Origin: Paramoeba atlantica
Taxonomy: Eukaryota; Protista; Discosea
NCBI GenBank assembly: GCA_977017575.1
Contig: CDRNVI010000062.1
Span: 62,001-126,000 of the forward strand
DNA: 64,000 nucleotides
Reading direction: 5' to 3'
Positions 37,960-59,175 of the stretch are shown piece after piece (within the stretch, counting starts at the first letter, position 1; each line of letters begins with the position of its first letter). The notes beneath the pieces are model-generated. The model saw nothing but the letters and a program-made list of their open reading frames with translations. It did no database searches and was not told the origin of the DNA. The position numbers and the translations under genes were made by a program.

Positions 37960-38466
37960 TTAATTCTTCTTCTGCACCAGCTTTTCAATGAGTGCGTTAC
38001 CCTTCTTACGGAATTGCGCTGCCTCAACTGAAAGTGCCTTGCGTTGAGCGGCTGACAACTTCTGGTATTTGGCAGATACTTTCTTTGCCGCCGCGCGGAA
38101 ACAAGCCTTAGGTTTCGTGTGGTTTCCCTTCTCCGCCTTGTATATCGATGGTAAGGTACGCTTTAAGAACAAGCCATAAGGACGGTAGCGTGCGCTTTTC
38201 ACTTGTGAGACGAGCGCTTTCTTTTGTTTCATATTCTCAGCAGCAATCTTGCTGAGGGACTGAACTTGAGCAGGAGGCAACCTTTTAAAAGCGGCATGTG
38301 CTCCGGTGAGTTTTTTTGGGCCACCCTTTTTACCTTTGAAAAATTTTGACATAAATACACGCAGCGCACTTGTCGGTGCTGATTTTCCAGCCCATGGCTT
38401 ATTGATAACTTTACGACGAAGCTTTGCGATGTTATTCGCGAGGTTTGGAAGCGCACGAGAAAACAT
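37960..38466 (-). CDS. KAP/ABF2-like HMG protein, copy 2, 168 aa
   Basis: intact ORF MFSRALPNLANNIAKLRR. Confidence 0.75.
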   Translation of the reverse strand: MFSRALPNLANNIAKLRRKVINKPWAGKSAPTSALRVFMSKFFKGKKGGPKKLTGAHAAFKRLPPAQVQSLSKIAAENMKQKKALVSQVKSARYRPYGLFLKRTLPSIYKAEKGNHTKPKACFRAAAKKVSAKYQKLSAAQRKALSVEAAQFRKKGNALIEKLVQKKN

Positions 38467-38643
38467 TATAAGTAGAAAGACAGGGAAAAAGATAATCTGG
38501 GTAATATGCAGTCAAACTTTACCCTAAATTTCATTTTTTTTTACTTTTTTTTGTCAAAAAAATATGTGTGATTAATTATTTACTTGATAGTTTTGAGTCA
38601 TTTTCACCCACTTTTAAGCTTTGTTTACGTCTTAAACCATTGA

Positions 38644-39927
38644 ATGGACTGCTCAGGGTGTAGAACTTTTGCATGCTTGACGCTAGTTACGTCAATTTTG
38701 CAAATAACGTCAGAGAATGTTGTTTCCTGGCTAGTAAATCACTCTTTCGGGGCTTATACACAGTGTCTTCGCTGCAAAGAGAAACCAAGAAGCGATCAAT
38801 GCTTCAAAAAACTCGAAGACGGTTCGAAGTGCCGCCTAAAAATTCCGAAATTTGGCCCCTTTTTTCCTTTAAACTGTCGAATTGTTGATAAATTTCGATG
38901 TTGGCTGCTTCTAGCGCAAGGTAACCTGCCCTTGAACGCAGCTTTGCAAGCGCTCAGGTCTCTTCGTTCAGTTCTTACAGACCTAAGTGAAATTGAACGC
39001 ATATTCAGCATTCCCCGTTCCCCGCACATGCTCATGAAGTACGTTATGGTGGATGAGACATACATTGGGAAACGCCTGCACCATCGCGGGAGACAAGTCC
39101 GCAAACAAAAGTTCTGGTTTATGACGGCTACAGAGGTTGATCCAAACACCGGGAAATCATTGCAAACATACTGGGAGGCAACGGTTCGCTGAATGAGAGA
39201 GGTTTGCCACAGGTTTGTCCGATCAGTCATAGAAAATCGAAATGCCATGGTAATTACTGATGAGTGGGCTGCATATCGTGGAATCGATGCCTTTTGCCGA
39301 CATTACACTATTTGCCACGCTGATGCATTCTCGCGAGAGCACTCCCCGCACGTCAACATTCATATCAACAACGCAGAGTCTGCCCATGCCAGTGTAAAGG
39401 GTTACTGCAAGCGTTTTTTTCACAAATGGGGCAGAAGTTTGGAAAGCTGTCAGGCACGAGCGCATTTAATTTGCACGGTCTTCTTCAAGGCGGAAGCTAA
39501 AAAGCGTTTTCAGAACCTTATGACTGTTATGGCGAGATACTCCTCTGACAATAGCGCGGTATACGGAGATCAGTCAAATGAAGAAGATGCGGAAGTTTCC
39601 AGTGACTCTAGTGAGGACCTTCAGGAAGATTATGAAAGCCCAACCACGCGACTAGGTCGAGCGCTCACTGAACATATAAGACTCAAACGCAGATATGGAA
39701 GGTATGAAATGGGATTCCACAAGTATGTGATAAAAAGTGCCACTGACCGCCACTACACTATTTATGTTGGTCCTGGTGGTGCTCGACGCACTTGCCGTGA
39801 CGGACGTCTGGGCAATCGATGTAAGCATATATATTTCATTTTGATGCGGGAACTTGGGGTGGATGAAAACCATTCAGTTCTATTAAAATCGGAATTTTCA
39901 TCAGAAGACCTATCGAATTTGTTGTAG
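38644..39927 (+). pseudogene. Merlin/ISXO2 (IS1595-like) transposase fused in frame to a SWIM zinc-finger segment; one in-frame TGA
   Basis: VDETYIGKR.HHRGR, ITDEWAAY, HYTICH, HINNAES; TGA at 39190-39192 in a continuous frame; C-terminal YTIYVG..TCRD..CKHIYFIL. Confidence 0.85.
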
Positions 39928-40089
39928 ACGAGGCAGAAATTATCGGTAAATCGTCTTATTTATATGCAAATTTGCGTAAAAACAAAAAAGGAACACATAT
40001 GTGATGGAAATATACAGTTTTTAGAAAAAACAAATTTAGGGTACATTTTGACTGCAGTTGACCCGATAATCTTGTAGGATATAAATTAC

Positions 40090-40450
40090 GTTTACTTTCT
40101 TTTTGCTTTTATGTGGAAAAAAGAGCTCTTAGATGTAGTTTATCGGTAACCCGGGGAACGGTATATTATTCAAATCGGAATTTGAATAATACTGTTACAC
40201 TGCCGACTAATATTATTGAGTTTTTAATTATAGGCAAAGCTATGCAACTTTTAATTAAAAAATCAATAATTTTTGTGCCAATAATTTTTGTAGAAATTTG
40301 TACATATCGACAAACAATAGAAGTTGTTAGTAGAGGGGCGGAAAAACCCAAAATTAGGTCAAAAGTTATATTTGCTCTCAAAAAGATTCAAGAATTTTTA
40401 CGGGGAAGAAAGTTGTTTTTCACCAAAAAATTATTATACCTAGGAGGTAC
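40090..40450 (+). repeat. AT-rich dispersed repeat; direct copy at 42555-42920, inverted copy at 48700-48920
   Basis: near-identical sequence beginning with the CCCGGGGAACGGTATATTATTCAA terminus. Confidence 0.85.
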
Positions 40451-40453
40451 AAT

Positions 40454-40570
40454 GGTGAGTATGTAGTTAGTATCTGTAGGCATGTGTGTGTTTCTGTAAA
40501 TTTCTGTGAATCGCTGTGAGTCGCTGTGAGTATTTTTTTGCGACGATAAATGGCGATCTAGAGACTCACC
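40454..40570. mobile_element. 117-bp MITE (GGTGAGT TIR) with AAT duplication
   Basis: absent from the paralogous site near 42915 (GGTACAATAGGTG), which acts as the empty site. Confidence 0.7.
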
Positions 40571-40600
40571 AATAGGTGTTCCTATAGTACGGGTAATAAT

Positions 40601-42490
40601 TTGCGTGTGCTGAAGGAGAGATGCGCTCTTCTTAAGGATGGTGAGTGGGGAAACTTGATTCCGAGTTCATCAACATGCTACAGGGGGGCGCAAGTAGGGA
40701 ACGCCCTCGGCGGATTTAGAAAAACGTTCAGTTTTTTGTATGTTGGTGGACATTTGGGTTCTCCATTTTCTCCGTGGTCTCCCGCAGGGGGTTGAGTACG
40801 TGTGCGTCGATAGCCTGTATCAAGCAGTCGTTGGGGATACTTTGATCCGCAACAGTCTTCGGCGTCGTGGTAGCAAGGATGACTTTTATGGGAGGTGTTT
40901 GTCACCACTGGGTTGTGATTTATTGGTGAGAAAAGTACAAACATGCATTGGTTCCCCTGAGAAAGTTTCTATGTATTGTATATTATTATGCTGTATATGT
41001 ATCCCTTCCCTCATCTCCCACCACCCCGCTCGGAACAGGTTCCGAGTCCCCATGCGCTGCAGGACCCTACTACGGGACCACGCGGCGTGCCTTCACTATC
41101 CGGCGACACCGGTACTTCTGCGCGTAGGAGGCTTCCATATACCGGAAGTCTCCCACACGGCGAGCAAACACGTTGTATGCGTGTTCTAGAGGATGTTCTA
41201 TGCACCTCTCTTGCTCACCAGACGTGGCGGATTCTGTGGGACCCCGATGCTCATGATGCATCATGAACCATGACTCCATTTGCCAGCATGCATCCATGGC
41301 CCTGACCATGTTGTATCATGAAGCATGGAAGTCATTTGTAGCATGTACGATGGGAATACCATCCGCGTCCCACAAATCCGTATATCTTCCCTGGCAGGAC
41401 TACGCTCTCCTCCCGTCTCGGGACCTCTTATCCCGATGAAGCCGTTCTTTTCGTTTCCCCAGGGGGGTATGCCGTGCTTTTCCCGGTGTCGTAGAGTGAG
41501 GCGACAGGTTCAGCAGGGAGCGCCCTTTGCGTCACCCCTGCTGATCCCAGTATCTCTACAGGTTTTCGCCCTGTATGAATAAAACCAAATATCTGAATCC
41601 ACGTTCAAGCACTATGTGCGCGGCAACAATACACGGGAGCGAGCAAATTTTGCGAAAAAAAACATGATAATTGTTCATGACTTAGCTGTATGAAGGTGAC
41701 AGATATTGTCTTTGTAAAAAGAAAAAGGTGTAGAAAGAAGAAGGAAGACACGCGGAAAGATTTCCAAGAAAGAGAAATGTAAATGCGTAATAATGTTTAT
41801 TCATTTCACGCAGACTGTATTCATGCTTCACAGCTCAGGGCTTAACATAGACTTCTTTGCTTCATTAAGCACAGGAGACTCCACTATACGGGGAAAAATC
41901 GCAAATGGTGATACTCCGCTAGCCATTCTAAGTAATGTGGTTCTAAGTAAGAGGAAAGTTCTTGCCCTGCCTTTCTATAGTACAAACGCCATATACGTCA
42001 CTAATTATAAAACTACTGAACAGTGGTCCTCTTGGAGAAGTAGCACCTCCACCGATAGCAGAGGGCTCGACGGGAAAGCGTTGGGTGCAGTACTTGTCGT
42101 ATCTGGTGTCTTGCGGGGCGTTGGAGGATTTCAAGGCCAACAATGCTAGCGAAACTATTCCGATCTTCGCTAATTACTTGGCAGTGTTTAACACCGAAGA
42201 TAGCGCAAGAGCTATTCTGGATATGCGCGCTCTAAATGCTCTTACAACGTCAGATGGTGTACCCTTCTCTATATGTAGTGCGCCATACTTTATTGGCGTA
42301 CTCCGCAGTCTGGATTTCACAAGGTTTAAATTGCGAACTGTCCACGCGGACATATCCAATGCATAGTATCAAAAACCAATTGGTAAACCATTTCGAAAGC
42401 GTCGTTGTGTCCTCCGTGGCCAGCAAATTTTACAATGTACCGTGCTTCCTATGGGTTATAAATATTCATGTGGAATACAGGGGGGAAATT
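40601..42490 (+). mobile_element. Decayed VIPER/TATE/DIRS-like tyrosine-recombinase retrotransposon
   Basis: RT relic ARAILDMRALN..ADISNA*YQ..VLPMGYKYS (about 42200-42470); upstream YR-like relic TCYRGAQV..NSLRRRG..SPEKVSMY (weaker). Confidence 0.65.
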
Positions 42491-43834
42491 AAGTTGTGTC
42501 AACAAAAATCGTGTTATTTTCTGGGATAGGCAAACTCATTTTTTGCCCACGATGTCACGTTTACTTTCTTTTTGCTTTTATGTGGAAAAAAGAGCTCTTA
42601 GCTGCAGTTTATCGGTAACCCGGGGAACGGTATATTATTCAAATCGGAATTTGAATAATACTGTTACACTGCCGACTAATATTATTGAGTTTTTAATTAT
42701 AGGCAAAGCTATGCAACTTTTAATTAAAAAATCAATAATTTTTGTGCCAATAATTTTTGTAGAAATTTGTACATATCGACAAACAATAGAAGTTGTTAGT
42801 AGAGGGGCGGAAAAACCCAAAAGTAGGTCAAAAGTTTTTGTTTGCTCTCAAAAAGATTCAAGAATTTTTATGGGGAAGAAAGTTGTTTTTCACCAAAAAA
42901 TTATTATACCTAGGAGGTACAATAGGTGTTCCTAGGTAAAATAACCCGGACGGTGGTTTGCATCTCTCTAATCTTGTCAAATGCGTTGCGAAGGGCAGGT
43001 TATTAAATGGTCATTAAGTGAGGGGATGCGGGTGTGATCTCGCATGATCTCACGACCGGGTGTTGACATAAAGCCAATCTCGATCCTCCTGCGTCAAATC
43101 TTCTCATAAAATTTGAGTTTTTGTGCAAAATCTATGCCACTCTTCTCTAAAAAGTGGTTGCCAAGATCAGACCTCATGAGAAATTCAAAAACTGACCACA
43201 AAGATAAAAAAATGTTTCTCGCCTAAAATTGACAACTTTTAAATAGAAAAACAATAAATTTTGTACCATGAAATTTAGCGATAAGAATTTTTGGCTTGGG
43301 TGTATTAGAATAATATAGTGTTATGCGGCTCTATTTGAATAATATAACGTTATTTGAATACTATAGTGTTAATTTGAATACTATAGTGTTAATTTGAATA
43401 AAATAGTTGTGAGTAGCGAAAAATGCGGTTTTGGTGGATGATAAAGCAAAGGTTTGTCTAAAATCCTGTCCATAATGCCAAAAATTGGCGATTTGAATAT
43501 TATACGGTTATTTGAATTAAATATAATTCATACTATATAATATAATTTAACTATAATTTATATAGTGTTAATTTGAATAAAATAGTTGTGAGTAGCGAAA
43601 AATGCGGTTTTGGTGTATGATAAAGCAAAGGTTTGTCTAAAATCCGGTCCATCATGCGAAAAATTGGCGATTTGAATATTATACCGTTATTTGAATAATA
43701 TAGTGTTAATTTGAATAATATAGTGTAATTTGAATAATGTAGCGCTATTGAATAATATACCGTTCCCCGGGCTACATGAAGTATCGGAACTCCAAGATAC
43801 GGTACTCGCGTTGTCAGGTTGACGAGACTAATTT

Positions 43835-44137
43835 ATGGATCCGGAAGTACAACCACGTAGAACTCGTAAGAAACCAACGTGGGTATTGACTCTTACGGAA
43901 GTTGCAAGGAACGGTAAATCGGTAAGCACTGTATGGTTATACGTAAACGATCGAAATAAAGAAATCATGGAGCGGGTGATCAGGGTGCATACATTGGACA
44001 ACCAACGTACCATAGTAACTACAGACGGGTGGAAAAGATACTCGAATGTTATTTCATTTTGCGATCACTTTACTGTGAACCATTCCAGTAAAGGTCGAAG
44101 AGTCATGTCATTCAGCAGTAGAGCGGGCTATACGTAA
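43835..44137 (+). pseudogene. Merlin/ISXO2 transposase fragment
   Basis: RKKPTWVL..VNDRNKEIMERVI..IVTTDGWKRY..HFTVNHS. Confidence 0.8.
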
Positions 44138-44952
44138 ACAAGGTAGGCTATCAATGCCGTTGAGAGAGTTTAAGCAGACCGAGGCGTTGTTTACCTTACT
44201 TTTTCTAGACTCTTCTTTCTAGACTTTCTAGTGAGTAGCTTGTTAATGAAAGCGAAGATGAAGATTGGAAGTTCATACAAAGGTTACATTTGTAAGTTAC
44301 GACGAAATAACCTTCAAAATCGGCGTCAATTACATGCAGTACAAGAAAAGAAAAAAAGTGTATTTTTTTGAGACAAGGAATGGAAAATGTATTTAACCGC
44401 ATTTAACATTTCGAAAACATGAGTATTAAGCTTTTTATGCACTATCGTAAATTTTCAAAAAATGACTACAATATAAGTCATCTGCAGCTAAACAATTGTT
44501 TTTCAACGAACATTCAACGAACATATCCCCAATCCCCAATTACATTCACAAACAAAAAGGATGCTCCCCTTTTTCAGCAAAAAAAAATCGATGTATGTTC
44601 GTGTTTCCGTTCATCGAAAAGGACGTCCTGTTCGATGAATATTCATCGAATGCCCCCCTCCCCAAATATTGTATAGAGTTGAGTCATTCTCATGGTAATC
44701 TGGTGCTCTATTGAATCAGGAAGGATGCAAATCTACTGGTCTATTAAATAAATAAAAATTATTAAGTAGCAAACTAAAGCATGATCTTGATATAGTATCA
44801 CCGTCGACGAAAATAAGGAACGTTCGCTGTGCATTCGATTATAAATATATTTTTTTATAATTAATTATAATTCTACTTTTTTAACACATTCCTATTTGTA
44901 ATAAATATTTCCAAACCTTTCGCTTCTTATGACTCCGAAAAAAGTGATACAG

Positions 44953-45456
44953 CTACTTTCGTTGTTCCACCAGCTTTTCAATGAGTGCGTTACCCTTGTT
45001 ACGGACCTGTGCTGCCTCAACTGAAAGTTCTTTGCGTTGAGCGGCTGACAACTTCTGGTATTTGGCAGATACTTTCTTTGCCACCGCGCGGAAACAAGCT
45101 TTAGTATTCTTGTGGTTGCCCTTCTCTGCCTTGTATATCGCCGGCATGACACGTCGCACGAACAAACTATAAGGGCGACATTTAGCACCTTGAACTTGCG
45201 CTTTCAGTGACTGTTTTCGCTTCATATTCTCGGCAGCAATCTTGCTGAAGGATTGCACTTGAACAGGAGATAACTTTTTAAAAGAGGCATGTACTCCGGC
45301 GAGATCTGGAGATCCTTTTTTACCTTTGAGAAACTTTGACATAAATACACGCAGCGCACTTGTCGGGGCTGATTTTCCAGCCCACGGCTTATTGATAACT
45401 TTATGACGAAGCTTTGCGATGTTCTTGGTGAGGTTTGGAAGCGCACGAGAAAACAT
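44953..45456 (-). CDS. KAP/ABF2-like HMG protein, copy 3, 167 aa
   Basis: intact ORF; shares its 3' flank with copy 4. Confidence 0.75.
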   Translation of the reverse strand: MFSRALPNLTKNIAKLRHKVINKPWAGKSAPTSALRVFMSKFLKGKKGSPDLAGVHASFKKLSPVQVQSFSKIAAENMKRKQSLKAQVQGAKCRPYSLFVRRVMPAIYKAEKGNHKNTKACFRAVAKKVSAKYQKLSAAQRKELSVEAAQVRNKGNALIEKLVEQRK

Positions 45457-46299
45457 TAGAGATAGAAAGACAGAGAATTAGACAAAAAACCTAGTATGAG
45501 ATAAAATAAGATAATTTATTAGCCTTAACCTTTTACCTGTAGATTTATTGAGGGAGATATGGTGAGCATCTAACTCGTCTTCTAAGATTAATTCCGCGAG
45601 CGTGGAATGGGCGTAAAGCGAGTAATCCGGCGAACGGTATATTATTTAAATCGCCATTTAATTAATATAGTGTTAAAATTTCTATCAAAAGAATATAGCG
45701 CTATCTAATATTTAAATACCGTAGTAGTAGGTCCGCCATAGTGGGAAAATGAGGTGAATTTTGCCATTTAAATAATAAATTTATAATAATTAATAAATAA
45801 TTTTAATTCATGGCACAATTGTTTTTTAAATAAAAGTTCAATTTTTGGCTGGAAACATTTTTTTAATTTTTTGTCAATTTTTGAATTTCTCATGAGGTCT
45901 GATCTTGGCAACCACTTTCTAGAGAAGAGTGCCACAGATTTTTGTACAAAAACTTAAATATCATGACAGGATTTGACGAAGGGAGAGCAAGAGGCTTTTC
46001 TTCAACACCCGGTCGTGGGATCATGCGAGATGATCTTGCATCTCACATCACACCCACAGCCCCTCACTTGAGGGGCTGCGGGTACTTCGACCGAGACCGC
46101 ACCGAGACCGCGGTTCGTATTTTCGGTGGGGAGAGATAGAAAAACAGCCAAAAGTTTACATTTGTTTTTATTTTTAAGTGGAATTTCGAATTCGGTGTAC
46201 GCTTCTAGCTATATTTTCCTTTGTTTCTTTCTCTGAATCATTTTCATCCTTTTTACTAACAACGGCGCGTTTTTCTTTTCCCGTAAACTTTTCTCCTAA

Positions 46300-46950
46300 A
46301 TGTTTATGAATATCGAGAGCAATGACGCATTGCAAGAACGATTGACTGCTCTTGAGCCTGAGACAAGTGCCGAACACAAACTCTTCGATGTCATCAAGGC
46401 TTCGACGATCCGGGTCTTTACGAAGAGGCCCGACGTTTTCTCCAAGCCACGTTTGGAGATAAGCAATGCGGAGCTCAGTAGTAAAGTGGATGAAATCGCA
46501 GGGCGCGTGTCACGCACGATGGACAACTTCCTACCTGTTGCACGCTCTGTGTGTGGCATTGACTTGACCTCGTGCATCGTGACTCGCGCCCTGTTCCACT
46601 TGGTTGACCGCCGGGGCCATCTGCATCTGAGCGTCCGCCCCCGGAGCGCGTACTTCCTTGGAGAGGCAGCTGCCGACCTTGAAGAGTACCTTCAAGAAGA
46701 CCCCCTCTTTTCCCCCCATCGCCAAGGTGAAGTGGGCGACTTTGTGGACAGCGTGTGGCGCTCTGTTTCCGGGAAGCGGTCTCGCGTTTGCCAGCAGTGG
46801 CGTCAGCGCAAGCGGACCGCTTCTCGTCAAAATGAATCAAGCAGCGGGGCTGAAGTCTCGCCACCACCCCCAGAATACAATCCTCCCTCGTATACGGTGG
46901 CCAGCCCGATCGCTACTTCGGATCGTTCGGTTCGTTTCCCGGCCTTATAG
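46300..46950 (+). CDS. Transposon accessory protein of unknown family
   Basis: intact 216-aa ORF inside the TIRs; clear homologue at 54432-55106. Confidence 0.8.
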   Translation: MFMNIESNDALQERLTALEPETSAEHKLFDVIKASTIRVFTKRPDVFSKPRLEISNAELSSKVDEIAGRVSRTMDNFLPVARSVCGIDLTSCIVTRALFHLVDRRGHLHLSVRPRSAYFLGEAAADLEEYLQEDPLFSPHRQGEVGDFVDSVWRSVSGKRSRVCQQWRQRKRTASRQNESSSGAEVSPPPPEYNPPSYTVASPIATSDRSVRFPAL

Positions 46951-47240
46951 GTGTGCTCCACATGAGACGAGAAAGTACGAAGGTAAGACGGTAATAAGGT
47001 CTTACGAAGGTAAGACGGTAATAAGATGGCAAAGAAGGTAATAAGGCAAGTTAAGGTAAGGCAATTTCGTTCCCACTACTGTTCTGTTCGATTTTCCCTA
47101 ATTACTAGCTCATTCCACTAATTGTTATTTCATTCCACTAATTACAAGTACATGCTAAAATATTTCCGCCCAATAATAATACAACCCTACTTATTTTGCT
47201 TTTAAATCGAAATTTCTTTCAATCGTTTCATTCTCTCTCT

Positions 47241-48185
47241 ATGTTTGGCATCTCGATAGCACAGGTGTGGGAGTTCTACAACGAGCTCCGACGTGTGCAT
47301 GGATCCGATGTTACGGAGACTGATTACCGTCGTGTTCAGTCATCATTGTGCATCTGTTCTCTGAATTGCACATGGGAACAGTTGTACGATGTCCAAAGGG
47401 CGTGGCTCTCACCGGACGCCCCGTTGATTTCAATTCGGACTCTCCGGGATGATTTTACTCGTGTGGCGCAGCTGTGCCGTTCACCCCTGCTCATGAACCC
47501 CGAGCTACGGTTTACCCAGGGAGTATCATGGTTATCTGACGTAACCTGCATGCTGGACGTCACGACGATCCCATGTCGTGCAAGAAAACCGAGAGAAACA
47601 CCTGATGAAACCACCCGAGATAGCACCTATTCGGGAAAGCACCGGCAGCACTGCTTCAAGGTGGAAGTTTGGCTAACACTGGCCGGAGTTCCATTCTTCT
47701 TTCGCGGACCAGTTGTTGGCAGCATGCATGATGCCAAAATTTATAAGAGTACTAGTGTGCATCGTACTCCGCTGTTCACTCACCACAAAGATGAAATGTT
47801 CTTGGCCGATCTAGGGTACATAGGTTGTGCGCACTGCCTTGTACCCTATAAGAAAACTGGCCGTGGTCTCACCGATGATGAAAAACGTGTGAATGAAAGG
47901 ATTTCACTGATTCGCTCTCGAATTGAGCGACGTTTTGCACATTTCGACAAGTTTCGTTTTCTTCATGGTACTGATCATGATATACCATGGGTCAGAGACG
48001 CTTTTCAAAATGTTTCTGTAGTTACGTATGGACTGCTGGCTACTCAGCCGCAGCATGATTTCGATTCGATTATAAATTTAAGTTTGAAATCTACAAGTGA
48101 TGAAGGTGAGTGTTTATGTAGTAAAGGGTGCGGTGTAGTTGATGGTATCGAAAGCCGCAGAGAGTGGCTTAAGGAAAAAGCCTAA
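47241..48185 (+). CDS. DDE_Tnp_4-type (ISL2EU/Harbinger-like) transposase
   Basis: CMLDVT, YSGKHRQHCFK, GSMHDAKI, LADLGYIG, NERISLIRSRIERRFA; uninterrupted. Confidence 0.9.
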   Translation: MFGISIAQVWEFYNELRRVHGSDVTETDYRRVQSSLCICSLNCTWEQLYDVQRAWLSPDAPLISIRTLRDDFTRVAQLCRSPLLMNPELRFTQGVSWLSDVTCMLDVTTIPCRARKPRETPDETTRDSTYSGKHRQHCFKVEVWLTLAGVPFFFRGPVVGSMHDAKIYKSTSVHRTPLFTHHKDEMFLADLGYIGCAHCLVPYKKTGRGLTDDEKRVNERISLIRSRIERRFAHFDKFRFLHGTDHDIPWVRDAFQNVSVVTYGLLATQPQHDFDSIINLSLKSTSDEGECLCSKGCGVVDGIESRREWLKEKA

Positions 48186-48920: not shown

Positions 48921-49666
48921 CTGTCCCTTTCATAAAATCTGTCCCCCCTACTTAAGAGTCCGTGGGGTACCCCCCCTACTTAAGAGTCCTTTTTGACGGA
49001 TCCTCGGGCTGCCTGCGGCGCGAAGTGCTGCCAGATTTGTTTTTTGATTTTTTTCTATTTTCTTTGATTTTTTTTGTTGTCTGCCCATTGCGTTTAGTTG
49101 CGTTTTTAATATTTCTAAGCTATTTATATTTGATGGTACTCCGAGGAAGGAGCAGACTACGGGAAGGCATGTTACACAACCATCCTCCTCAGCCCTCTTC
49201 AACTCTCTCACGAACTGATCGAAGTTCTTCTCCCCTCCGATCACCCTCCTCACACGAGAACGGCAAATTTGCCGACCAAACCCCTTCATCTATCTCCCCA
49301 CCTAACCACGGTAACCTTCCGTTACCCCATTCCGGGAGCCAAGCTCGTTCTCTTCTATCCCAAGTGTGCGCGGTATTGTATTACGAGTATCATTATATTC
49401 TCCTGCATATCAAGGGTCATATTCTGAATATTTATGACAGTTTTTTTTTGAACATGCCTCAGTAGCACGTCGGGTACAGACGCCGACCTTCATTAGACAA
49501 AAATAGAAAAAAAATAGAGAAACACATGGACAAAAAAGGAACCGGCCATATTGAAATTTTATGAAAAAATGCTGACCCCCCCACTTAAGAGTCCGAAAAA
49601 TTGTGACCCCCCCACTTAAGAGTCCAAATGCCCAAAATCGGCGGACTCTTAAGGAGGGGGGGACAG
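48921..49666. mobile_element. TA-flanked MITE (CTGTCCCCCCTACTTAAGAGTCC TIR)
   Basis: inverted termini and internal CCCCCCACTTAAGAGTCC repeats. Confidence 0.75.
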
Positions 49667-49726
49667 TAATTTTAATTATAAAATATAAAACTTTTAGATT
49701 TATAATTACCCCCCCTCTAATAACTA

Positions 49727-50707
49727 CCGTCACCCCCCCCTTTATACTTCCGCCGGTTTCGGTACTTTTGGAAGTATAAAGGCGGGGGTCTGACTTTCGG
49801 AAGTATAAAGGGGGGGTCTGATTTTTTGAAAAATCCGCGAAACAAATATTTTTGAAAAAGGGGCAAAAAAAAAAAATGCGCCGCTTCGCGGCGCTGGTTT
49901 CCTATTATTCTATCTAAAAATCAATCATCTAATCTCCAAACATGCAGGGCACAATGTTTGCTTCCGTGTTTCACTTGCACACAATCAACATACGCTGTAT
50001 ATTACGCTGTAGTGAATACGTGTCGGGACGATCTACCATTAGAAGCTTCATGGGACAGTCTTTGAAACGAGGTACATTCGCCTTTGCTGCAGCAGGCGCA
50101 TGTCCGCGCTGGCTGTCATCCCGCCCAGTTCGCTAAGGAGGAGTTCGTCATTTTTTTCGCATCTCGACATGTTTGTCCTCGTGCAAACCCCATCGCGCTT
50201 GCGATCACGATAGACTTTTTTCTAGAAAAGTCCGACACCATTTTTTCGGATGGAGCGGATGGTTCGAGATCAGACGCCGTACTTCTCGCTGATTTGTGGA
50301 GCACTGCTACTCGAATGACACACATTCAACTTCTCCTACATTGTTGGGTTCTTTCCTCCCTGGGGTGAACCGACGGACACTGGTAATGTCGCAGGCTCCG
50401 CGCTTGAAACCATTATTTCGTTGGGAGGCCGAACGCGATGAAGAGGGGGATAAAGCTTAACCCACTGTGAGTATTGACATGGGAAAAAATACGGCAAATA
50501 ATTTAAATGTATATCTAGCAATATCTCTACACACATCTCTAACGTTTAATAAAAAAAATGTAGAAAATTGTTATAAAAAATGCTTCGCGGCGTATTTTTT
50601 TTGGGACCGGAAGTATAAAGGTGGGGGGCTGATTTTTCATCTGGATGAAAACGGAAGTATAAAGGGGGGGGTTGACCCCCCTGAAGTATAAAGGAGGGGG
50701 GTGACAG
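49727..50707. mobile_element. TA-flanked MITE (C(C/T)GTCACCCCCCCCTTTATACTTC TIR)
   Basis: inverted termini, GAAGTATAAAGG subterminal repeats, GCGCCGCTTCGCGGCGC hairpin. Confidence 0.75.
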
Positions 50708-50849
50708 TAATTATAAATAGAAAATATACAGTGTTATATTTAATTACGGTATTATTTAATTACGCTTTTAAGGTTATTTTTGGCTAAAATTAATCTTAAT
50801 CAAATTAACCGTAATATAATCCACTCGTAAATTAATAATTTTTGAACAC

Positions 50850-53360
50850 ACTTTTTGAGTAACGTTTAAGCGCCCAAGCCATTGGATTCGTCTGAGATCA
50901 TTTTATAAAGGTTTGTGTTTCGCGCTGACGTAGTTCCCTGGCCATTTGCTTCTGAGAGAGCTTCTCCCCCGGGAAGAACAGGAAGCGTTTTACCGAGAGA
51001 ATGAGGTTCCAGGCGGTCACAATCTTCTCGTCAGGGGATTTAGATGGGAACCTACGGCAAACATGTGCTAAGTGTTCTCTCCACGCGGGGGTCTGGACTG
51101 CATAAAGTTTGCGCAGAGCCCCTCCCCAACAGTTCCGCCAGGTTTTCGGACGGGGCGTGGTCGGTTCCTTCTGTATACGCGCTCTGTGTGCATGGGGGCG
51201 TAACGGAAACAGGTTCGGACGGAATTACGGCCGTGTGTGCGGGCTCCGGCTGGAGGGGGCTGGCCGTAATGGCTGCCACCGCGATCCCTTCGAGTATCAT
51301 CTCGCTGACGAGCGGGGTGGGCTCCGCCATAAGGACCGGCGCGAGGCTGCCTTCCTCAGAGTGTGGCTCACCGGCGTGCTGGTTGCCATCCCCCTGACGA
51401 GGGAAGTTCGGTTCAGAACCTTTCGGGAGGTTACCGGCCTTTGCGGGAATGCTGCGGGTTGCGGTGGGGCCCTAGCCTTAGGGGGGGATGTTACGTAAGG
51501 GCCTGAAGGGAGGCTGCGCACGACAGACCGAGTATTGCGAGTCTTGCGGTGAGGTCCCGGGTTAGCCTCGATGCAGCCCCGTCTCAGGTTGCATCGCACC
51601 AGTTCCGCCGACCACCCCGAGTCGGCGATTAAACCCTCAGAAGGGAGGAAACACCAGTATACGGACCCGTCTTCCGCCTCGAAAGGGGTCCATGTACATG
51701 CGAAGTCGTGAGCTAGTGCCAACGTGTGGCAAAGGAAGAAGGGAATATTTTCTGCGGGGAGGGGGGATTTCGTGTTGATGCACGAGCCGTGTGTTGTTCC
51801 GTCGAACACCCTGACATGGTGTCCGTATGGCGAATCGTTGAAAGGTACGAGCAGGGTGGCCCAAATGCTGGGCGAGGCGCCCACGTCCTCGTCTGTCTCC
51901 AGGTAGGGGCCTCCATGGTCGCTGGTGAGACATACGCGGTCCGACGGGACCCCTAGCGTGCGGCCGACTGTGTGAGCTAAGCCTTGGAGTGGGCATCCGG
52001 GTGGGACCGGAACCATGATGTGCCCCATAGCGTGGGGCCCTAGATGCAGGTTAACCTTGGTCCAGACCTCCTCATGGAGTTCCGGAGGGGGAGGGGGGGC
52101 GTCCCTGGTGGGCCGTGCGCTCCCCCCGACTGGTGGCGAAATCGAGGGGCGTCAGCCATAGGGGGCGGCGGAGAGTTTACTTCAATGTGCCCACTCGCCG
52201 GGGTTGTCGGGGCCCTGTTTACTAAGGCGATGCGCTGCAGTTCCCCGAGCCACACGTTGTGGAGTTCGGAGGCTGAGGCCCACTGGAGGTCTGAGATATC
52301 TGAAGCTCCCCACCGGTGTTCCTTGAGAAGGTGGGCGGCGGTCGCGCGGACAGCGGCCTGTTCGTGGACGAGCTTATGTTCCGCCAACTTCCGCTGATCG
52401 AGGAAGACTCGCCCACAAGTATGACAAAGATGTGCTCGATCCTCGACCAGTTTGCGTTCCCTATGCTCCTGCCTCGCGTCCTGGCAGAGTAGGGCGAGCC
52501 ACTCTGAGATGATGTCGTCCCGCGCCCTCGCGAAGTCGGCCTTCAGAGCTCGGGCAGCGCTCGCTAGACGATGCTCTTCGACTTCGTGTCCGAGTACACT
52601 AGGTCCGAGGACACTCCATCCTTGCGTCCCCTATTGAAGAGAGCCCCCATAATTTCGGCATTCTTAGATGCTATGATCGCAAGTTGGTCCTAGAGAGGGG
52701 GTGCTTTGTCAGTTACGGTGCCGGAGGGGTTCTGTACCTTGGGTTGATAGGCGCGGAGGGATGGGTGAGAGCAATCTGGCCTTGTCCGCGTAAGAGTGGG
52801 TCAAATGGGTGGGCGTCGGCCGAGGGGCGAAGGAGACCTGGGAGGAGGAGCGGGTGCGGGGGCCTTCGGCTTGACGGAGGCTCGGCTTGCGGGGAGCCGA
52901 CCGGCCCCTGGACGTGGCGCGCGTGGGGGTAGAGAAACGTGAACGAGAGCGTGTTCTACGGCCTGGGGATGTGTCCCGTCCCGGGGAGATTCTGGCGGGT
53001 GATGAGTGGCTACCAGCGCTCTGGCGTTCGGCGCGGAGTTCAACACACCCCGGGCATAGAAGGTTAAAAGGTCGCCTCGGGGAGAAGGGCTGCGCGCAGA
53101 AACCACACGGCCGGTTGTCGAGGGAGGAGGAGGCCCCCGCGTGACGACGGGGGGAGGTCTGCTTGGGTCCACCGTGGGCGGGCCCGAGAGAAGAGGAGTG
53201 GTCCCGCGGAGATCGGGACAATCGTCGAGATGAATCAGCGCACGGCTGGCACATCCGGTGGGAGGGGGAGAGTGGTTCATACTTCGAACCTCAAGTTGCG
53301 CAAAACAAGATTCCCTGGAGCGGGGGTTTTGCCATGGGGGTAAAATAACGAAGAAAATTT
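50850..53360 (-). mobile_element. Decayed GC-rich retroelement-like ORF region directly downstream of an SL-like exon (CRE/SLACS-like 5' part?)
   Basis: two C4 zinc fingers, Pro/Arg-rich linkers, 2A-like GCIEANPGP, several frameshifts; no RT retained. Confidence 0.5.
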
Positions 53361-53396
53361 AACAAGGTACAGAAACTGTATCTTATCGTTAAAGTT
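53361..53396 (-). ncRNA. Spliced-leader exon-like sequence AACTTTAACGATAAGATACAGTTTCTGTACCTTGTT
   Basis: contains the conserved euglenozoan SL core ATACAGTTTCTGTAC and begins AAC; no intron follows. Confidence 0.7.
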
Positions 53397-54192
53397 AAAT
53401 CTTTATCGGTAAAATGATATCGCAGAACATAACCTATTGAACACCAATTTAAATTTTAGAATTACAAGACGCTGTGGAGCAAATTTATGATCAAAGCGAT
53501 GATGAAACTGACATGGAAGAAAACCGTTCTGAATTAGAAATGGTTCAACGAATCTAAGTCATTCCGGATTGCTCCGATTGGTCACTGGCAGGCCAGACCC
53601 TTCACATGTAGATTTGAAACTTTCGAGGCCGAAGTCCTCTACCTGTTTTCGTTAGTACAAGGCGGCAACAACGTGCTGCTACCAACCCGTTGCGTCGACG
53701 AACCCAAGACAATCTTCAAAAGTTATCATTCCTGCAGCTACGTAGCATTCCTGTAGCCGTTAACATTCTCCCCGGAACGGTAAACCGGACTACGGTTTAA
53801 AATCCCGGTATGACGGCGTCGTCTTCACCAAGAAAGTTGCACCAAGAACCTTTGTGCATCGATCTTTGTGCGCCATCTGTGTCCCCCCCTTTGAAGACCA
53901 CTGGGCGTGGCCCTGCCTCGCCTTATCCCGATGCAACAGTCGGTTGCAGTGCACCCCTCCGGCTGTGTAAAGAGGTGGTAAGTTGTCTGGAGAATCTGAC
54001 ACCCCCCTTACTTCACCACACGTCCAGTGACTAAATGTGGTGAAGTAAGGGGGGAGGCGAAGTAAGGGGGGGTAACGGTATGTGGAAGCCGGGTTCAGGC
54101 GGGGGGTGCAGGGGGTGTAGGAGAGTGCAGGGAGGCTCTGCAGCTGGCAATGAAACATTCTAAGGATTCACACAGATTGGTGCCCATACATG

Positions 54193-55353
54193 TGAGGGGC
54201 TGCGGGTGACGTTAACCGCGGTCTCGCACGGTCTCGGCGCGGTCTCGCGCGGTCTCATATTTGTAAAATGGGCTAGAGGGTAAAAACACGACTTGCAGAT
54301 TAGGTAAAATGGTATTTGAGGTGAACACTAAACATCCGCTTTGACACACTTAAAACCATCACGAATAATAAGCAGAACTTAAAATATGATCTTCTCTCTT
54401 TCTCCTTCAACTTTTCCTGAACGCGTCCTTTTTAGTTCAGCCGCGGGAACGAGACTACACGGTCTGATGTTCTTATTTCTTTCGCCGTATAATAGGACGG
54501 CGTGGGGACATTCTTCTCCTGATCTGCAGCCGTGGGACAAGCTTCTGGGGTCTGAGATGCTGGCTTCTGAGATGCTTCATCCGCCCCTCGTTTGAGCCGG
54601 CGACGATGCCGGTAGGTCACGCAGGCACGAGAACGCCTCCCGGATACAGAGCGCCACAAACTATCCACGAAGTCTCCTACTTCGTTGTCCCGTCGAGGTG
54701 CATACATCGGGCTGAGTTCCAGGAAGCTTTGGAGATCCTGGGCAGCTTCTCCAACAAAGTAAACGGCGTGCGACGGAACATCCATAAGCAGATGCCCGCG
54801 GCGATCTACGATGTGAAGAATGGCGCGCTCCAGTATCTGTGGCGTAATGTCTATGCCACAAACGGAACGGCCCCCGTGAAGGAAACTATCCATGGTGCGA
54901 TGAATGCGTTCCAGGATTTCTTCGACTTTTGCTCCTAGCTCTTCTTCTGTGATAATCAGCTTCGGAGGGGTAAATACGTTAACACGTTTCGTGAAAACCC
55001 TCTTGGTTGAAGCTAAAACAACCTCATAGATCGCCTTTTCACTTTCAACCTCCGAGGGGTTCGCAATTCGAGCTTTTAGGTCAGCATTACTCTCAATTCC
55101 AGTCATTGACAAGACAAAAAGATACGGAAAGCGAATTAACAAACTAAAGATGTTCAAAAATAGTCTTACTTCTATCTTCATCAAGGCCTACAATATGAGT
55201 ACTCCATACACATCGTATATACGAAGTGAAAATTCTTTTTTATTCAAATTATGCTCTACTCTCCATCCAAAAACTAGTATTTTTTTGTCTCTCCAAGCCA
55301 AGAGCAAACCGCGGTCTCGCGCGGTATCGTGTGCCACGACCCGCAGCCCCTCA
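54193..55353 (-). mobile_element. Non-autonomous relative of the ISL2EU element carrying only the accessory ORF
   Basis: TIR TGAGGGGCTGCGGG; TG duplicated at 54191-92 and 55354-55; GCGGTCTCG subterminal repeats. Confidence 0.85.
54432..55106 (-). CDS. Transposon accessory protein of unknown family, 224 aa
   Basis: intact from MTGIESN; shares RVFTKR, RTMD.F..RSVCGID, VDRRGHL, EVGDFVDS.WRSVSG.RSR and TSDR with 46300-46950. Confidence 0.8.
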   Translation of the reverse strand: MTGIESNADLKARIANPSEVESEKAIYEVVLASTKRVFTKRVNVFTPPKLIITEEELGAKVEEILERIHRTMDSFLHGGRSVCGIDITPQILERAILHIVDRRGHLLMDVPSHAVYFVGEAAQDLQSFLELSPMYAPRRDNEVGDFVDSLWRSVSGRRSRACVTYRHRRRLKRGADEASQKPASQTPEACPTAADQEKNVPTPSYYTAKEIRTSDRVVSFPRLN

Positions 55354-55737
55354 TGAGGGGCTGTATGTTGACCCGTAAAACAGCAAAAAAAAGAGCCTTG
55401 GAAAATATGAACCTTGGAAAAAACAGTAAAATAGAGGAAAAAGCGAATCTAAAAGTTGTATAGTACCCTGAGTGTCCTCCACCATTTGTAGTACTTTTTT
55501 GGGTCTTTTTGGAACTGAATAATTGAGTTCATAACTATTTTTATAACTTTTTGAGGACATCTTTTTAAGGCCTTAATGCTTTTTATATAGCCTCTATAAG
55601 GCATTTGTGGTTGTTATAATGTTTTTTATCTCAGGAGAGAACTAGAGAACTAGGAAGAAAAAAGAAACAAAGATATTTGCTAGGGGAACGAGATCTATCA
55701 AACACAATGGAGAGTCTGTAATTAGTATCTGTAGATA

Positions 55738-56502
55738 CAGGGAGTGGCACGAAAATATGGGGGAGGGTCAAAATTTTTATAACTTGTCCAATTTTGAAAA
55801 GTAGCACCGCATTCGAGAGCTCTCGCAGAGTTACGTGTCACCTGATAATGCATTTCCCGTATCCAGGGGGGTAGGCCCCTATGCCAAAGGAGCTGAAAAC
55901 ACCAATTGCAAGTTTCAAAATTTGAAAAATATCTCATTTAATATCCACAATATCCTCCATTTTTTGGTAATGTAATCTTAATACGAGTTGGAACTGTCCT
56001 CAAAGTGTCTAAAAATGATTTTTTCTGTTCTCCTTTCAACAATTCAATCCCAGATGCGATCGCCGATCGCAACTCTGACCGATTTGTGGGGCATAATGAG
56101 CTTTCGTGGGCATCAGTTATCCCACAAATATTTTCTTCATACTTCCTTACTAAAAGTATGTGGTGGGTAACTTTAAGCTGTCCTCGAGGACTGTAACAAT
56201 TCCGATCACGGTGCTGTGCACCCCTGCTATTGAAATAATCCTGTTTCTGTGGGATAACGAGGCGAAAAGGTAAAAAAATAGAAGGAAAATACCTAAAATA
56301 TCGAAAAAATCGAAGAATCTGAAAAAAATTGCAAGTTCCAAAAATGTATTTTTTTGTCCCGAATAAAAACAAATTAAAAACACGGGAAACGCAGTATCAG
56401 GTGACACGTATCTCTGCGAGAGCTCTCGAATGCGGTGCTACTTTCCAAAATTGGACAATTTATACGAATTTTAACCCCCCCATATTTTCGTGCCACCCTC
56501 TG
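55738..56502 (-). mobile_element. Internally deleted Tc1-like element with about 125-bp TIRs
   Basis: TA|CAG termini; Tc1 C-terminal relic PTNRSELRSAI..TVPTRIK..NGGYCGY*. Confidence 0.8.
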
Positions 56503-57947
56503 TATGTGCGGGTTTCTGTGAGTCGCTGTGGGCTGCTGTGGTTCGCTGCGAGTACTTTTTTTCGTCGGAAGACCCCGAAAGACTGGAAGAGGGACTTCAA
56601 AAGATTGGTGATGCTCAATGGCCAAAAAAAAGAAAGCTGACCATATCTAGAAAAAGTGTCCAGCTGGCCACTTTTTCAAGGGCGAACTCGCCGTGAAAAA
56701 TCATGCCTTTTTTTGTTTCATTTGCTATGCCGTCGGCTACTGAAATGCGTTTCAAAAAGATGGTTCTGGAAGTTAGTTTGGGACCTGAGAAATATTCCAC
56801 AAGCCTTCAAAAAGCTGTGGTCTGTCAATTTGGGGAACATAATCAAGCATCTTCTCGTTTTTTTTGGATTGTAAATGCCCGCATTCCGAGTCGTGTTTTT
56901 GGTAAAAGGGTTCTAAAAACTGCTGACTGCACTCGATTCTTTTCATGTTTGGGGAATTACAGAGACTGATTCATGATCAATATCTCTGTTTTCAAAATTT
57001 CGATAAAAATCGTTTTTATGCTCGCTTTATGCCCATTTTGGGCTCGCGGAATTTATCTTAGTACAGTCCCGTTCCGGCCATATTGCAGGAGTTCTCTGGA
57101 GAGTGCGCCATGAAGATTGATAAAATAAGTGGTGTAAAAGTGATATTTGGAGGAAGAGGTTTAGTAGAAAAATATTCTAAAGACGGCAGCTGTTGAAATA
57201 TAAATGCATAAATGCAGTCAAAAATACCAAAATGGAATGGAAAAGAAAGAGACACCTTCTGATGAGGAACGAAAAAAAGCGCGTTAGATACTCATCGCAT
57301 CTCCCCCAATAAAATACCGGTGAAACGGTTATTAAGGATAAAAGTAATTAAGGCAGAACGGATTTAAAAATTTATTATTGCCTTAATTAAAGTGGCGCTG
57401 ATAAAAGCCCAAAACAGTTCTTATTTAAATATTGTCGTTTGTAGCATAAATATCACATTTCTGCTAAAAGTGTTCAATTTCTGATCATTTTGCATGTTTT
57501 TCGAACTTTTCTAGACGAGCTTCGCATGTTTCGCCTACCTTTACGGTCTTCAACCAGTTCAACGTGTGAGAGAAAAGCTAAAACGATCATTGAAAGGAGA
57601 AGTCCGAGACGGAATCATGAAATTATTTTTTCCCCCAAAATGACAAAAAATTAATTATTGCCTTAATTAAAGCTGCCTTTAATTAAAGTTGCCTTAATTT
57701 TAATTACCCTTAATTGAAGTTTCTACGGTAATTTTTCCGCTAATTAATATTCCGTTAACTTTTATTCCCATGATTATTATTCGGTCAATAAGTACTTTGA
57801 CGGCATTTTTGACAAATTTAGACAAATTGCCCTATTGGAAGGAGAATCGCGCATGAGCCTATTAAATAGGGGGGATAGTATTTGTAAAAGGGACAGTAGT
57901 TATTTCCAAACCTTTCGCTTCTTATGACTCCGAAAAAAGTGATACAG

Positions 57948-58451
57948 TTACTTTCTTTGTTCCACCAGCTTTTCAATGAGTGCGTTACCCTTCTTACGGA
58001 ATTGTGCTGCCTCAACTGAAAGTGCCTTGCGTTGAGCGGCTGACAACTTCTGGTATTTGGCAGATACTTTCTTTACCGCAACTCGGAATAGCACCTTTCG
58101 ATCTTTGCAGTTTTTCTTTTCCGCATTGTATATCGCTGGCATGTTACGCTGCACGAACAAACTATAAGGATGACATTTAGCACTTTGAACTTGAGCTTTC
58201 AGTGAATGTTTTCGCTTCATATTCTCGGCAGCAATCTTACTGTAGGACTGGACCTGAGCTGGAGATAACTTTTTAAAAGCGGCATGTGCTCCGGCGAGAT
58301 CTGAGAATCCCTTTTTACCTTTGAAAAACTTTGACATAAATACACGCAGTGCACTTGTCGGGGCTGATTTTCCAGCCCACGGCTTATTGATAACTTTACG
58401 ACGAAGCTTTGCGATGTTCTTGGCGAGGTTTGGAAGCGCACGAGAAAACAT
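57948..58451 (-). CDS. KAP/ABF2-like HMG protein, copy 4, 167 aa
   Basis: intact from MFSRALPNLAKNIAKLRR (ATG at 58451). Confidence 0.75.
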   Translation of the reverse strand: MFSRALPNLAKNIAKLRRKVINKPWAGKSAPTSALRVFMSKFFKGKKGFSDLAGAHAAFKKLSPAQVQSYSKIAAENMKRKHSLKAQVQSAKCHPYSLFVQRNMPAIYNAEKKNCKDRKVLFRVAVKKVSAKYQKLSAAQRKALSVEAAQFRKKGNALIEKLVEQRK

Positions 58452-58640
58452 TAGAGATAGAAAGACAGGGAGCAAGCTAAATAACCCAGTATAGCGTAGA
58501 ATACCATTATCCGGAGGGATTGAACGAATAATACACACTTTTTTTTTGTGATTTCTTGAGTGACTTGTATGAAATGTTAACATTATTTGTTCGTTTTTCT
58601 AGAAACAAATGACTAGCACTACCTTTTCTCTGGCTCTTGA

Positions 58641-59175
58641 ATGAACTACACGGGTTGTCCCCATTTTGAATGCGCTTTGCTAATTAGCCTGAGATCATTA
58701 GATTCTGCCACAGAAGAGGATTGCATATTACGGTTAAGAAACTATAAACTTGTTGTGCAGAAAGTTTCCTGTGAGCATAGGTATGAAAGAATGTCGTGTA
58801 TTCTCAAGGGCGATAAGTTTCACTGCCCCGTACGCTCGTACCGCAAGTTAATGTCACAGAATGGCCCCTTCAAACATTTAAAGACCAAAGTTTCTGCCAA
58901 GCAAATTTTTATTGGGATTGTATCATTCTCATATAGCATGCTCCGCACTGAAGTAGCAAAGGAAGAAGAAGTTTCTCAAAGAACCGCAGTCTTCCAACGC
59001 CGGACCATCGAAAAGGCACTGCCAGAAATTCGTCAGACCCGCCAGCGGGATGCCCAGAGCACAGTCTTCTTTATGCAAGTTGACGAAACATGGTTCTCAA
59101 AAGTTAACAGCTATCCAAACTGTTCAGACGCTGGTGGAGTGCTCTCGTGGCAACAAGCTGGAAGAGATTCATGTC
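58641..59175 (+). pseudogene. Merlin/ISXO2 transposase 5' portion truncated by a hAT-like insertion
   Basis: MNYTGCPHFEC start resembles 38644 MDCSGCRTFAC; GPF; MQVDETWFSK. Confidence 0.65.

Follow-up and report, generated by a model that had tools for sequence, protein, structure and literature searches.

Twin HMG-box genes beside Merlin transposons in a kinetoplastid-type genome: probably an old gene array with independent insertions

We analysed a stretch of 64,000 nucleotides from a 45.7-Mb genome assembly filed as Paramoeba atlantica (GCA_977017575.1), hereafter the window (G000:C62:62001-126000; the prefix w marks a position within it), in which four genes for a small high mobility group (HMG)-box protein lie among pieces of Merlin DNA transposons. 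A preliminary description of this region had proposed that Merlin elements captured a gene resembling those of the KAP proteins, which package kinetoplast DNA (kDNA), and spread it as cargo. Our results argue for a different history: very probably the genes form an old tandem array of short, redundant host HMG genes that has been stretched by transposons of several classes, among them Merlins that arrived independently of one another. The boundaries of the elements, the empty sites on the sister haplotype and the relative ages of genes and insertions carry this reading.

The four window genes are intact from ATG to stop on the minus strand at the places given in the preliminary description; their products of 167-168 aa start with MFSR or MFAR and are 64-78% identical in protein to the w37960 copy (copy 2 in Table 1). 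The family is far larger than these four. A six-frame search of the genome yielded 38 matches, 35 of them full-length or nearly so without an internal stop and the other three fragments, which by our own count represent about 20 loci when sister contigs of the two haplotypes are counted together. Within any single contig all HMG copies lie on one strand, and on every contig this is the strand of the host genes; in the window the long host open reading frames (ORFs), for a DNA polymerase A, an RPA-like gene, a mitochondrial carrier and an RsmB-type methyltransferase, are likewise on the minus strand, in agreement with the co-orientation noted earlier. A Pfam scan of ten further window ORFs gave no match. 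Tandem HMG pairs on contigs C9/C4 and C71/C46 are separated by spacers of 553-906 bp. One HMG copy is identical to a transcript of MMETSP0151, also filed as Paramoeba atlantica, and is therefore transcribed.

Near-identical HMG genes occur in pairs on separate contigs (C62/C81, C4/C9, C46/C71, C28/C37 and C30/C3), protein kinase genes show the same contig pairing, and C81 aligns to the window at 97-99% identity; these observations indicate that the assembly contains both haplotypes. C81 is accordingly the sister-haplotype contig of the window contig C62, with L002 and L006 as loci of the C81 haplotype and L001 as a locus of the C62 haplotype. Wherever a contig has a sister contig, its HMG loci occur on both, and the allele of copy 1 is found on C50.

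The availability of both haplotypes allows the ends of the Merlin elements to be read directly. Merlin A, next to copy 2, is a complete element whose ends are imperfect inverted repeats of about 33 bp starting with GGGTAATATGCAGTCAAA, and it is flanked on either side by the 8-bp target-site duplication GATAATCT. On the C81 haplotype there is a single GATAATCT, and the sequence runs straight on, which makes this an exact empty site for Merlin A. The ATG of copy 2 sits 25 nt outside the duplicated target. The transposase ORF (w38644-39927) is interrupted by one in-frame TGA at w39190-39192 and, with this stop read through, matches DDE_Tnp_IS1595 at 40.4 bits (cut-off 27).

The reverse situation is seen for Merlin C, a 1,220-bp element of the C81-type haplotype that we delimited at L036 10640-11859 (= G000:C81:42135-43354), L036 coming from a second public assembly. 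It has 24-bp inverted ends and the target duplication GAATAATT, is placed 136 bp downstream of the next-but-one HMG copy, and has its exact empty site on the C62 haplotype. Its DDE_Tnp_IS1595 match (26.8 bits, E = 6e-6) falls just below the 27-bit cut-off, and copies 32-41% identical to Merlin C lie where the domain search gave scores exceeding this cut-off. With their terminal inverted repeats and 8-bp target duplications, Merlin A and C both show the traits of the Merlin superfamily.

Merlin B, next to copy 4, is an old remnant shared by both haplotypes. Its ORF starts at w58641 and its left end lies about 40 nt upstream of the copy 4 ATG, a boundary placed where homology among the HMG paralogues ends (w58492) and homology to a Merlin at C9:688789 begins (w58498). 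The element is cut at about w59170 by another insertion. This insertion (w59170-60800, about 1.6 kb) has 17-nt inverted ends, CATGTCCATAGTGGCAG and CTGCCACTATGTTCATG, AT-rich subterminal repeats and G/C-tract palindromes.

Two HMG genes thus stand head-to-head with a Merlin transposase, as had been described, at a spacing of 177 bp for copy 2 and, for copy 4, of 186 rather than 189 bp. The third association, a Merlin fragment said to lie about 0.8 kb from copy 3, is also real (Table 1), and the fragment is found in L002 and L006 as well. The picture of intact genes beside decaying transposases needs correction for Merlin A, which is hardly decayed, with its one TGA and complete ends. The shared start of the two diverged transposases was likewise seen correctly, but it is not special to the pair: the N-termini are MDCSGCRTFAC in Merlin A, MNYTGCPHFEC in Merlin B and MDCSFCPNFQC in Merlin C, which makes the motif M-x-x-[ST]-[GF]-C-x-x-F-x-C a family trait of the transposases. 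The N-terminal part of Merlin A has no detectable similarity to that of Merlin B, and Merlin B and C are 31-33% identical over about 155 aa. Judged by these sequences, the Merlins that neighbour HMG genes are of unrelated subfamilies.

The genes are much older than the insertions. Synonymous divergence (dS) is 0.26-0.59 among the window paralogues listed, and alleles of HMG genes on the two haplotypes differ at about 2% of synonymous sites (pS 0.02, pN/pS 0.35), from which it follows that the HMG duplications are at least ten times older than the haplotype split. Merlin insertions A and C are younger than that split. All HMG copies are under purifying selection: across 120 pairs of paralogues the median ratio of nonsynonymous to synonymous divergence, omega, is 0.35, so that the dN/dS check suggested earlier found the paralogues constrained. 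Copies that neighbour Merlin pieces are 74-84% identical to the w37960 copy. Homology between paralogues extends beyond the coding sequence and the untranslated flanks into ordinary intergenic DNA, without inverted ends.

We considered retroposition of mRNA capped with a spliced leader as another route by which the genes could have been copied, and rejected it; the copy ends carry no leader remnant and no poly(A), and homology within subgroups continues past the probable splice acceptor into intergenic DNA, which also contradicts it. As a separate observation, the allele of copy 2 that has no Merlin beside it (L002, G000:C81:13083-13586) reads KLR in place of KPW, which changes the family-invariant Pro24 and the nearly invariant Trp25. 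This allele pair has the highest pN of all pairs (0.024), and the copy 2 locus may be under relaxed constraint.

We propose that the HMG family expanded through local, DNA-level tandem duplication within polycistronic gene units. Each gene encodes an N-terminal basic helix with the MFSR start followed by two HMG boxes, a candidate for mitochondrial DNA packaging. The Merlins are separate, self-contained DNA transposons, some of them young, that inserted together with other classes of element into the short spacers of the array. Because the array consists of closely spaced genes of 0.5 kb, any element that lands inside it adjoins an HMG gene. Redundancy among the HMG genes probably makes such insertions tolerated, and the number of copies may in addition provide gene dosage for a large kDNA. 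The head-to-head orientation fits the antisense bias described for kinetoplastid Merlin.

By its predicted structure and its sequence profile, the product of these genes is a small, basic twin HMG-box protein that resembles TFAM, Abf2 and the KAPs. A two-HMG-box architecture is typical of the mitochondrial DNA-packaging proteins TFAM, Abf2p and HMG-type KAPs. The AlphaFold (AF2) model, built from 20 family members, has a mean predicted local distance difference test score (pLDDT) of 84 and consists of a helix at residues 2-22 and then two three-helix boxes. In structural alignment HMG-box proteins take all of the first 12 places, and the match ranked after them reaches only Z 3.6. The matches include the HMG box of TOX (Z 8.8, root-mean-square deviation (rmsd) 1.8 A over 72 residues, for residues 91-168), Abf2p (Z 8.7 and 8.2), TFAM (Z 8.1), tandem HMGB1 (Z 7.8) and UBF box 3 (Z 6.5, rmsd 1.6 A, for the same residues as TOX); both predicted boxes align with Abf2p, TFAM and HMGB1.

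The direct Pfam match of the protein is sub-threshold (HMG_box_2, E = 0.07, 14 bits against a cut-off of 22.4 bits), a sequence profile search of the PDB gave nothing significant (E = 0.29), and the matches of Foldseek alone all had E above 0.4. The HMG fold is settled by the structural alignment together with profile-to-profile comparison: the profile of the HMG genes studied here and that of their relatives, Perkinsela included, align end to end with 99.8% probability in hhalign, and the profile of the relatives matches HMGB1 at 2e-11 and TFAM at 9e-9. The HMG and KAP-like identity proposed in the preliminary description is borne out by these comparisons.

A profile search against 1.84 billion representatives returned just 30 relatives. 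Those with names are transcripts of diplonemids (Flectonema, Rhynchopus, Namystynia, Diplonema), the prokinetoplastid Apiculatamorpha, and two Perkinsela proteins of 171 aa with an MFSR start, KNH07353.1 and KNH07949.1, annotated as 'high mobility group protein' and 'mitochondrial DNA packaging protein'. Four relatives (P0022, P0025, P0026 and P0027) exceed the Pfam threshold for HMG_box. The HMG proteins have an isoelectric point (pI) of 10.8-11.4, with 17-18% Lys and 13-15% Ala, and by composition their first 30 residues hold 7-9 Lys or Arg and no Asp or Glu. The MFSR start is kept across the family and in the Perkinsela relatives. Sequences of this kind suggest localisation to the kDNA or mitochondrion.

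Table 1. Features of the window that bear on the HMG genes and their neighbouring mobile elements.
Feature	Position	Strand	Remarks
HMG copy 1	w17951-18457	-	most divergent window copy, 64% identity to copy 2; host genes lie between it and the other copies
HMG copy 2	w37960-38466	-	168 aa, pI 11.4; in both haplotypes (L001, L002)
HMG copy 3	w44953-45456	-	167 aa
HMG copy 4	w57948-58454	-	167 aa counted from the conserved MFSR start
Merlin A, left 8-bp target-site duplication GATAATCT	w38491-38498		25-32 nt upstream of copy 2 ATG
Merlin A, complete 1,566-bp element	w38499-40064	+	antisense to the host gene strand
Merlin A, right target-site duplication GATAATCT	w40065-40072		
Merlin B, old truncated Merlin	w58494-59177	+	N-terminal 179 aa of transposase only; both haplotypes
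Merlin DDE fragment	w43850-44086	+	867 bp downstream of copy 3; both haplotypes; found by tblastn with the C-terminal part of Merlin A and with Merlin C
Further Merlin DDE fragment	w61856-62095	+	
C62-only segment, about 2.1 kb	w40458-42556		between direct copies of about 370 bp
Dispersed repeat, about 600 bp	w42677-43275	+	left 'arm' of an apparent inverted repeat around copy 3
Inverted 600-bp repeat copy, first part	w45818-46031	-	right 'arm'; remainder at w48584-48920
Harbinger/PIF transposase (DDE_Tnp_4, not Merlin)	w47196-48185	+	E = 2.9e-19

Merlins are only one of the classes of element that have lengthened the spacers of the array. On C62 a spacer of 6.5 kb separates copies 2 and 3, compared with 2.2 kb on C81, and copies 4 and 5 lie 10.2 kb apart, start to start, on C62 and 14.6 kb apart on C81. 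These differences result from haplotype-specific insertions, namely Merlin A, the 2.1-kb C62 segment, Merlin C and a 2.26-kb reverse-transcriptase element. The direct copies that bound the C62 segment (w40088-40457 and w42557-42928) contain part of the 600-bp dispersed repeat. The 2.26-kb insertion, at L036 14880-17142 in the C81-type haplotype and missing from C62, has a 9-bp overlap at its junction and contains an RVT_1 ORF and an ORF of 400 aa; it looks like a polymorphic retroelement within the HMG array.

Copy 3 appears to be enclosed by inverted arms, and we tried the possibility of a foldback or Pack-type element around it. This was rejected: the arms are two copies of the dispersed 600-bp repeat, and the other HMG copies are not flanked in this way. 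The right-hand copy is split into its two parts by a Harbinger-type element, whose ORF lies 1.7 kb upstream of copy 3; the C81 haplotype matches this stretch up to about w46947, where locus L006 ends. Genome-wide there are at least 132 candidate copies of the 600-bp repeat, many of them full-length at 84-93% identity, and it may be a non-autonomous element. Besides the pieces in Table 1, the window holds a piece of it at w40208-40457.

The Merlin population of the genome is large. We counted at least 525 Merlin-like candidates. The end sequence of Merlin C alone has 81 matches in the genome and none in a reversed control. Five of the copies so found are complete, at 1.22 kb, and agree at 97-100% in protein sequence; one of these five contains a stop. 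The others are decayed copies of greater length and numerous short, non-autonomous derivatives (about 400 bp) that have the same ends. Full-length copies of the family that are 97-98% identical occur on C7, C28, C37 and C65. Only one of about 45 Merlin C-family elements, the C81 copy, is adjacent to an HMG gene. The empty sites, the target duplications, the near-identical copies and the short derivatives together indicate recent movement, and Merlin looks recently mobile in this kinetoplastid-type genome. Elsewhere, at G000:C21:145145-164000, at least 12 partial Merlin DDE segments are arranged in tandem with a period of 1,692 bp, which suggests that part of a Merlin has been amplified in the manner of a satellite.

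Is the closeness of Merlins and HMG genes more than chance would give? Within the window, a Merlin piece is found no more than 1 kb from three of the four HMG genes, for which random intergenic placement gives p ~0.009, a post hoc value. Across the genome, a Merlin DDE detectable with Pfam lies within 2.5 kb of 4/35 HMG matches and of 2/91 kinase genes (Fisher p = 0.05; p 0.08 when counted by unique locus), so that the genome-wide excess over the kinase control is weak. Searching the 1.5-kb flanks with tblastn revealed Merlin-derived sequence at 6 of 17 HMG loci; at copy 1 none was found by tblastn within 1.5 kb. Set against the local Merlin density of about 25%, 6/17 is no excess (p = 0.23). 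Closeness to Merlin pieces is real at these six loci.

Several observations weigh against a simple history of tolerated insertions into host genes for a mitochondrial protein. The same count of 6/17 does exceed a uniform genome-wide expectation of about 5% (p ~1e-4), and the enrichment test was based on coordinates and 1.5-kb flanks, against a background of unmatched sensitivity. None of eight long host ORFs placed in the window has a Merlin within 1 kb, and three of four HMG genes do, as read from the coordinates. Merlin A entered one paralogue at -32 from the ATG and Merlin B another at about -40, both in antisense orientation, and such near-identical spots hint at a target preference beyond tolerance. 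As to the protein, none of the 20 relatives looked up by name comes from a trypanosomatid and no trypanosomatid KAP is among them, and its mitochondrial targeting is a prediction from sequence.

One rival explanation is that Merlin transposases choose the flanks of HMG genes, for example through an AT-rich motif in the conserved 5' flank or through open or bent DNA at highly expressed genes. The insertions of Merlin A and B are independent events, the permutation within the window speaks for a preference, and the targets of Merlin A and C look alike, with GATAATCT followed by TGTAGG in one and GAATAATT followed by TGTGAA in the other; the candidate flanks are w38467-38498 and w58455-58498. Yet this argument is post hoc and builds on two or three events, the other Merlin pieces lie 0.14-1.8 kb downstream of HMG genes in either orientation, about 44 of the 45 Merlin C-family elements are elsewhere, and the excess over the kinase control is marginal. 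We consider a choice of HMG flanks by the transposase unlikely, and slightly more so the stronger form in which the array, beyond being a tolerated dump, is a preferred Merlin landing pad by way of its conserved 5' flank.

A second alternative holds that the HMG protein is itself encoded by a mobile element, as a DNA-bending accessory, and is no host mitochondrial protein. The family is indeed multicopy and lies among transposons, and one copy is flanked by the inverted 600-bp arms. These arms belong to a common dispersed repeat and are found at a single HMG locus, however, the loci with a sister contig occupy both haplotypes, omega is that of constrained genes, and on all contigs the copies are co-oriented with the host genes. 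The relatives in Perkinsela and diplonemids, moreover, are single small genes, those of Perkinsela annotated as mitochondrial DNA packaging proteins. A transposon origin of the protein is thus very improbable.

Cargo capture, in which Merlin acquired a KAP-like gene, spread Merlin-HMG units and had its copies retained by the host, is the least probable of all: for all the similar spacing of the two head-to-head pairs and the Merlin-derived sequence within 1.5 kb at six of 17 loci, it fails every structural test that the preliminary description had itself proposed, with the two elements whose ends are intact already contradicting it, since the HMG genes lie beyond their ends and target duplications, by 25-32 nt for Merlin A and 136 nt for Merlin C, both elements missing from a sister haplotype that has the HMG gene, neighbouring Merlins from different subfamilies (at most 33% identity, against 64-84% among the HMG copies), a Merlin C family almost entirely located away from HMG genes, paralogue divergence far above the age of the insertions, paralogue homology that runs into ordinary intergenic DNA without inverted ends, no common ends enclosing an HMG-Merlin unit, and no such unit recurring at several loci, the 600-bp arms being confined to one.

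We return to the old host array with independent insertions and to the systems it resembles. Like TFAM, Abf2p, Candida Gcf1p and KAP6, the proteins are small and very basic, with a putative N-terminal leader ahead of a tandem pair of HMG boxes; such a pair is also present in KAP6 of T. brucei (PMC7463775). They differ from the TFAM, Abf2p and KAP6 type in sequence, with identities of just 10-17% and no direct detection by Pfam HMG models, and in number, with about 20 loci compared with the usual one or two. Trypanosomatid KAPs are described as highly basic proteins of low molecular weight in which Ala and Lys are abundant and a short import signal stands at the N-terminus (PMC8080567), and the present proteins are similarly small, basic and Lys/Ala-rich with an acid-free N-terminus, a likeness of composition. 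Several KAP-like genes are also known from the free-living bodonid Bodo saltans, which has six that were left unplaced (PMC5683618).

Closest are the two proteins of Perkinsela sp. CCAP 1560/4, KNH07949.1 and KNH07353.1, which are of the same length and have the same MFSR start, and whose family profile aligns with ours over its whole length. The Perkinsela family is likewise multicopy, with six members in one 90%-identity cluster. Identity to the Perkinsela proteins is about 25%, and their name is a database annotation; we know of no experimental test behind the name 'mitochondrial DNA packaging protein'. So low an identity shows that the present genome is not that of Perkinsela; it may belong to a bodonid present in the Paramoeba atlantica culture. 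The family described here adds to the mitochondrial-type HMG proteins a new member that is divergent and has expanded to an unusual extent.

The Merlins of this genome are ordinary Merlins, and their combination with HMG genes is not a new type of system. They agree with published Merlin and IS1016-like elements in their DDE_Tnp_IS1595 domain, 8-bp target duplications, inverted ends and mostly antisense orientation. Merlin copies in kinetoplastids show an antisense bias with respect to host gene units, which has been explained as a 'safe haven' (PMC8101967). The Merlin copies reported from Bodo saltans and Perkinsela are few, divergent and apparently inactive, and no ends were found (PMC8101967); the present genome differs from this published picture in having hundreds of copies, near-identical families, derivatives of about 400 bp and haplotype-specific insertions. 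The only likeness to Pack-MULEs and other transduplicating transposons is that a gene of host type lies near a DNA transposon. Here the inverted ends do not enclose the HMG gene and no shared unit is found repeatedly, and the genes, in contrast to captured fragments, are complete and subject to selection.

One further observation concerns the assembly. On contigs C139 and above (e.g. C156, C164 and C190) kinase matches come in exon-like pieces with stops, whereas the kinetoplastid-type contigs are intron-free, and the assembly may hold a second organism besides the latter.

No transposon of the proposed kind, with an organelle DNA-packaging gene as cargo that it amplifies, is present, and a false lead is thereby removed. 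What the locus reveals instead is an early-branching or free-living kinetoplastid with about 20 loci of a divergent twin-HMG-box family that it has in common with Perkinsela and diplonemids, and the members of this family are candidate packaging proteins for unusual mitochondrial genomes. The recent mobility of Merlin that we see in this kinetoplastid, moreover, goes further than the published record, where copies are few and decayed and no ends were found (PMC8101967).

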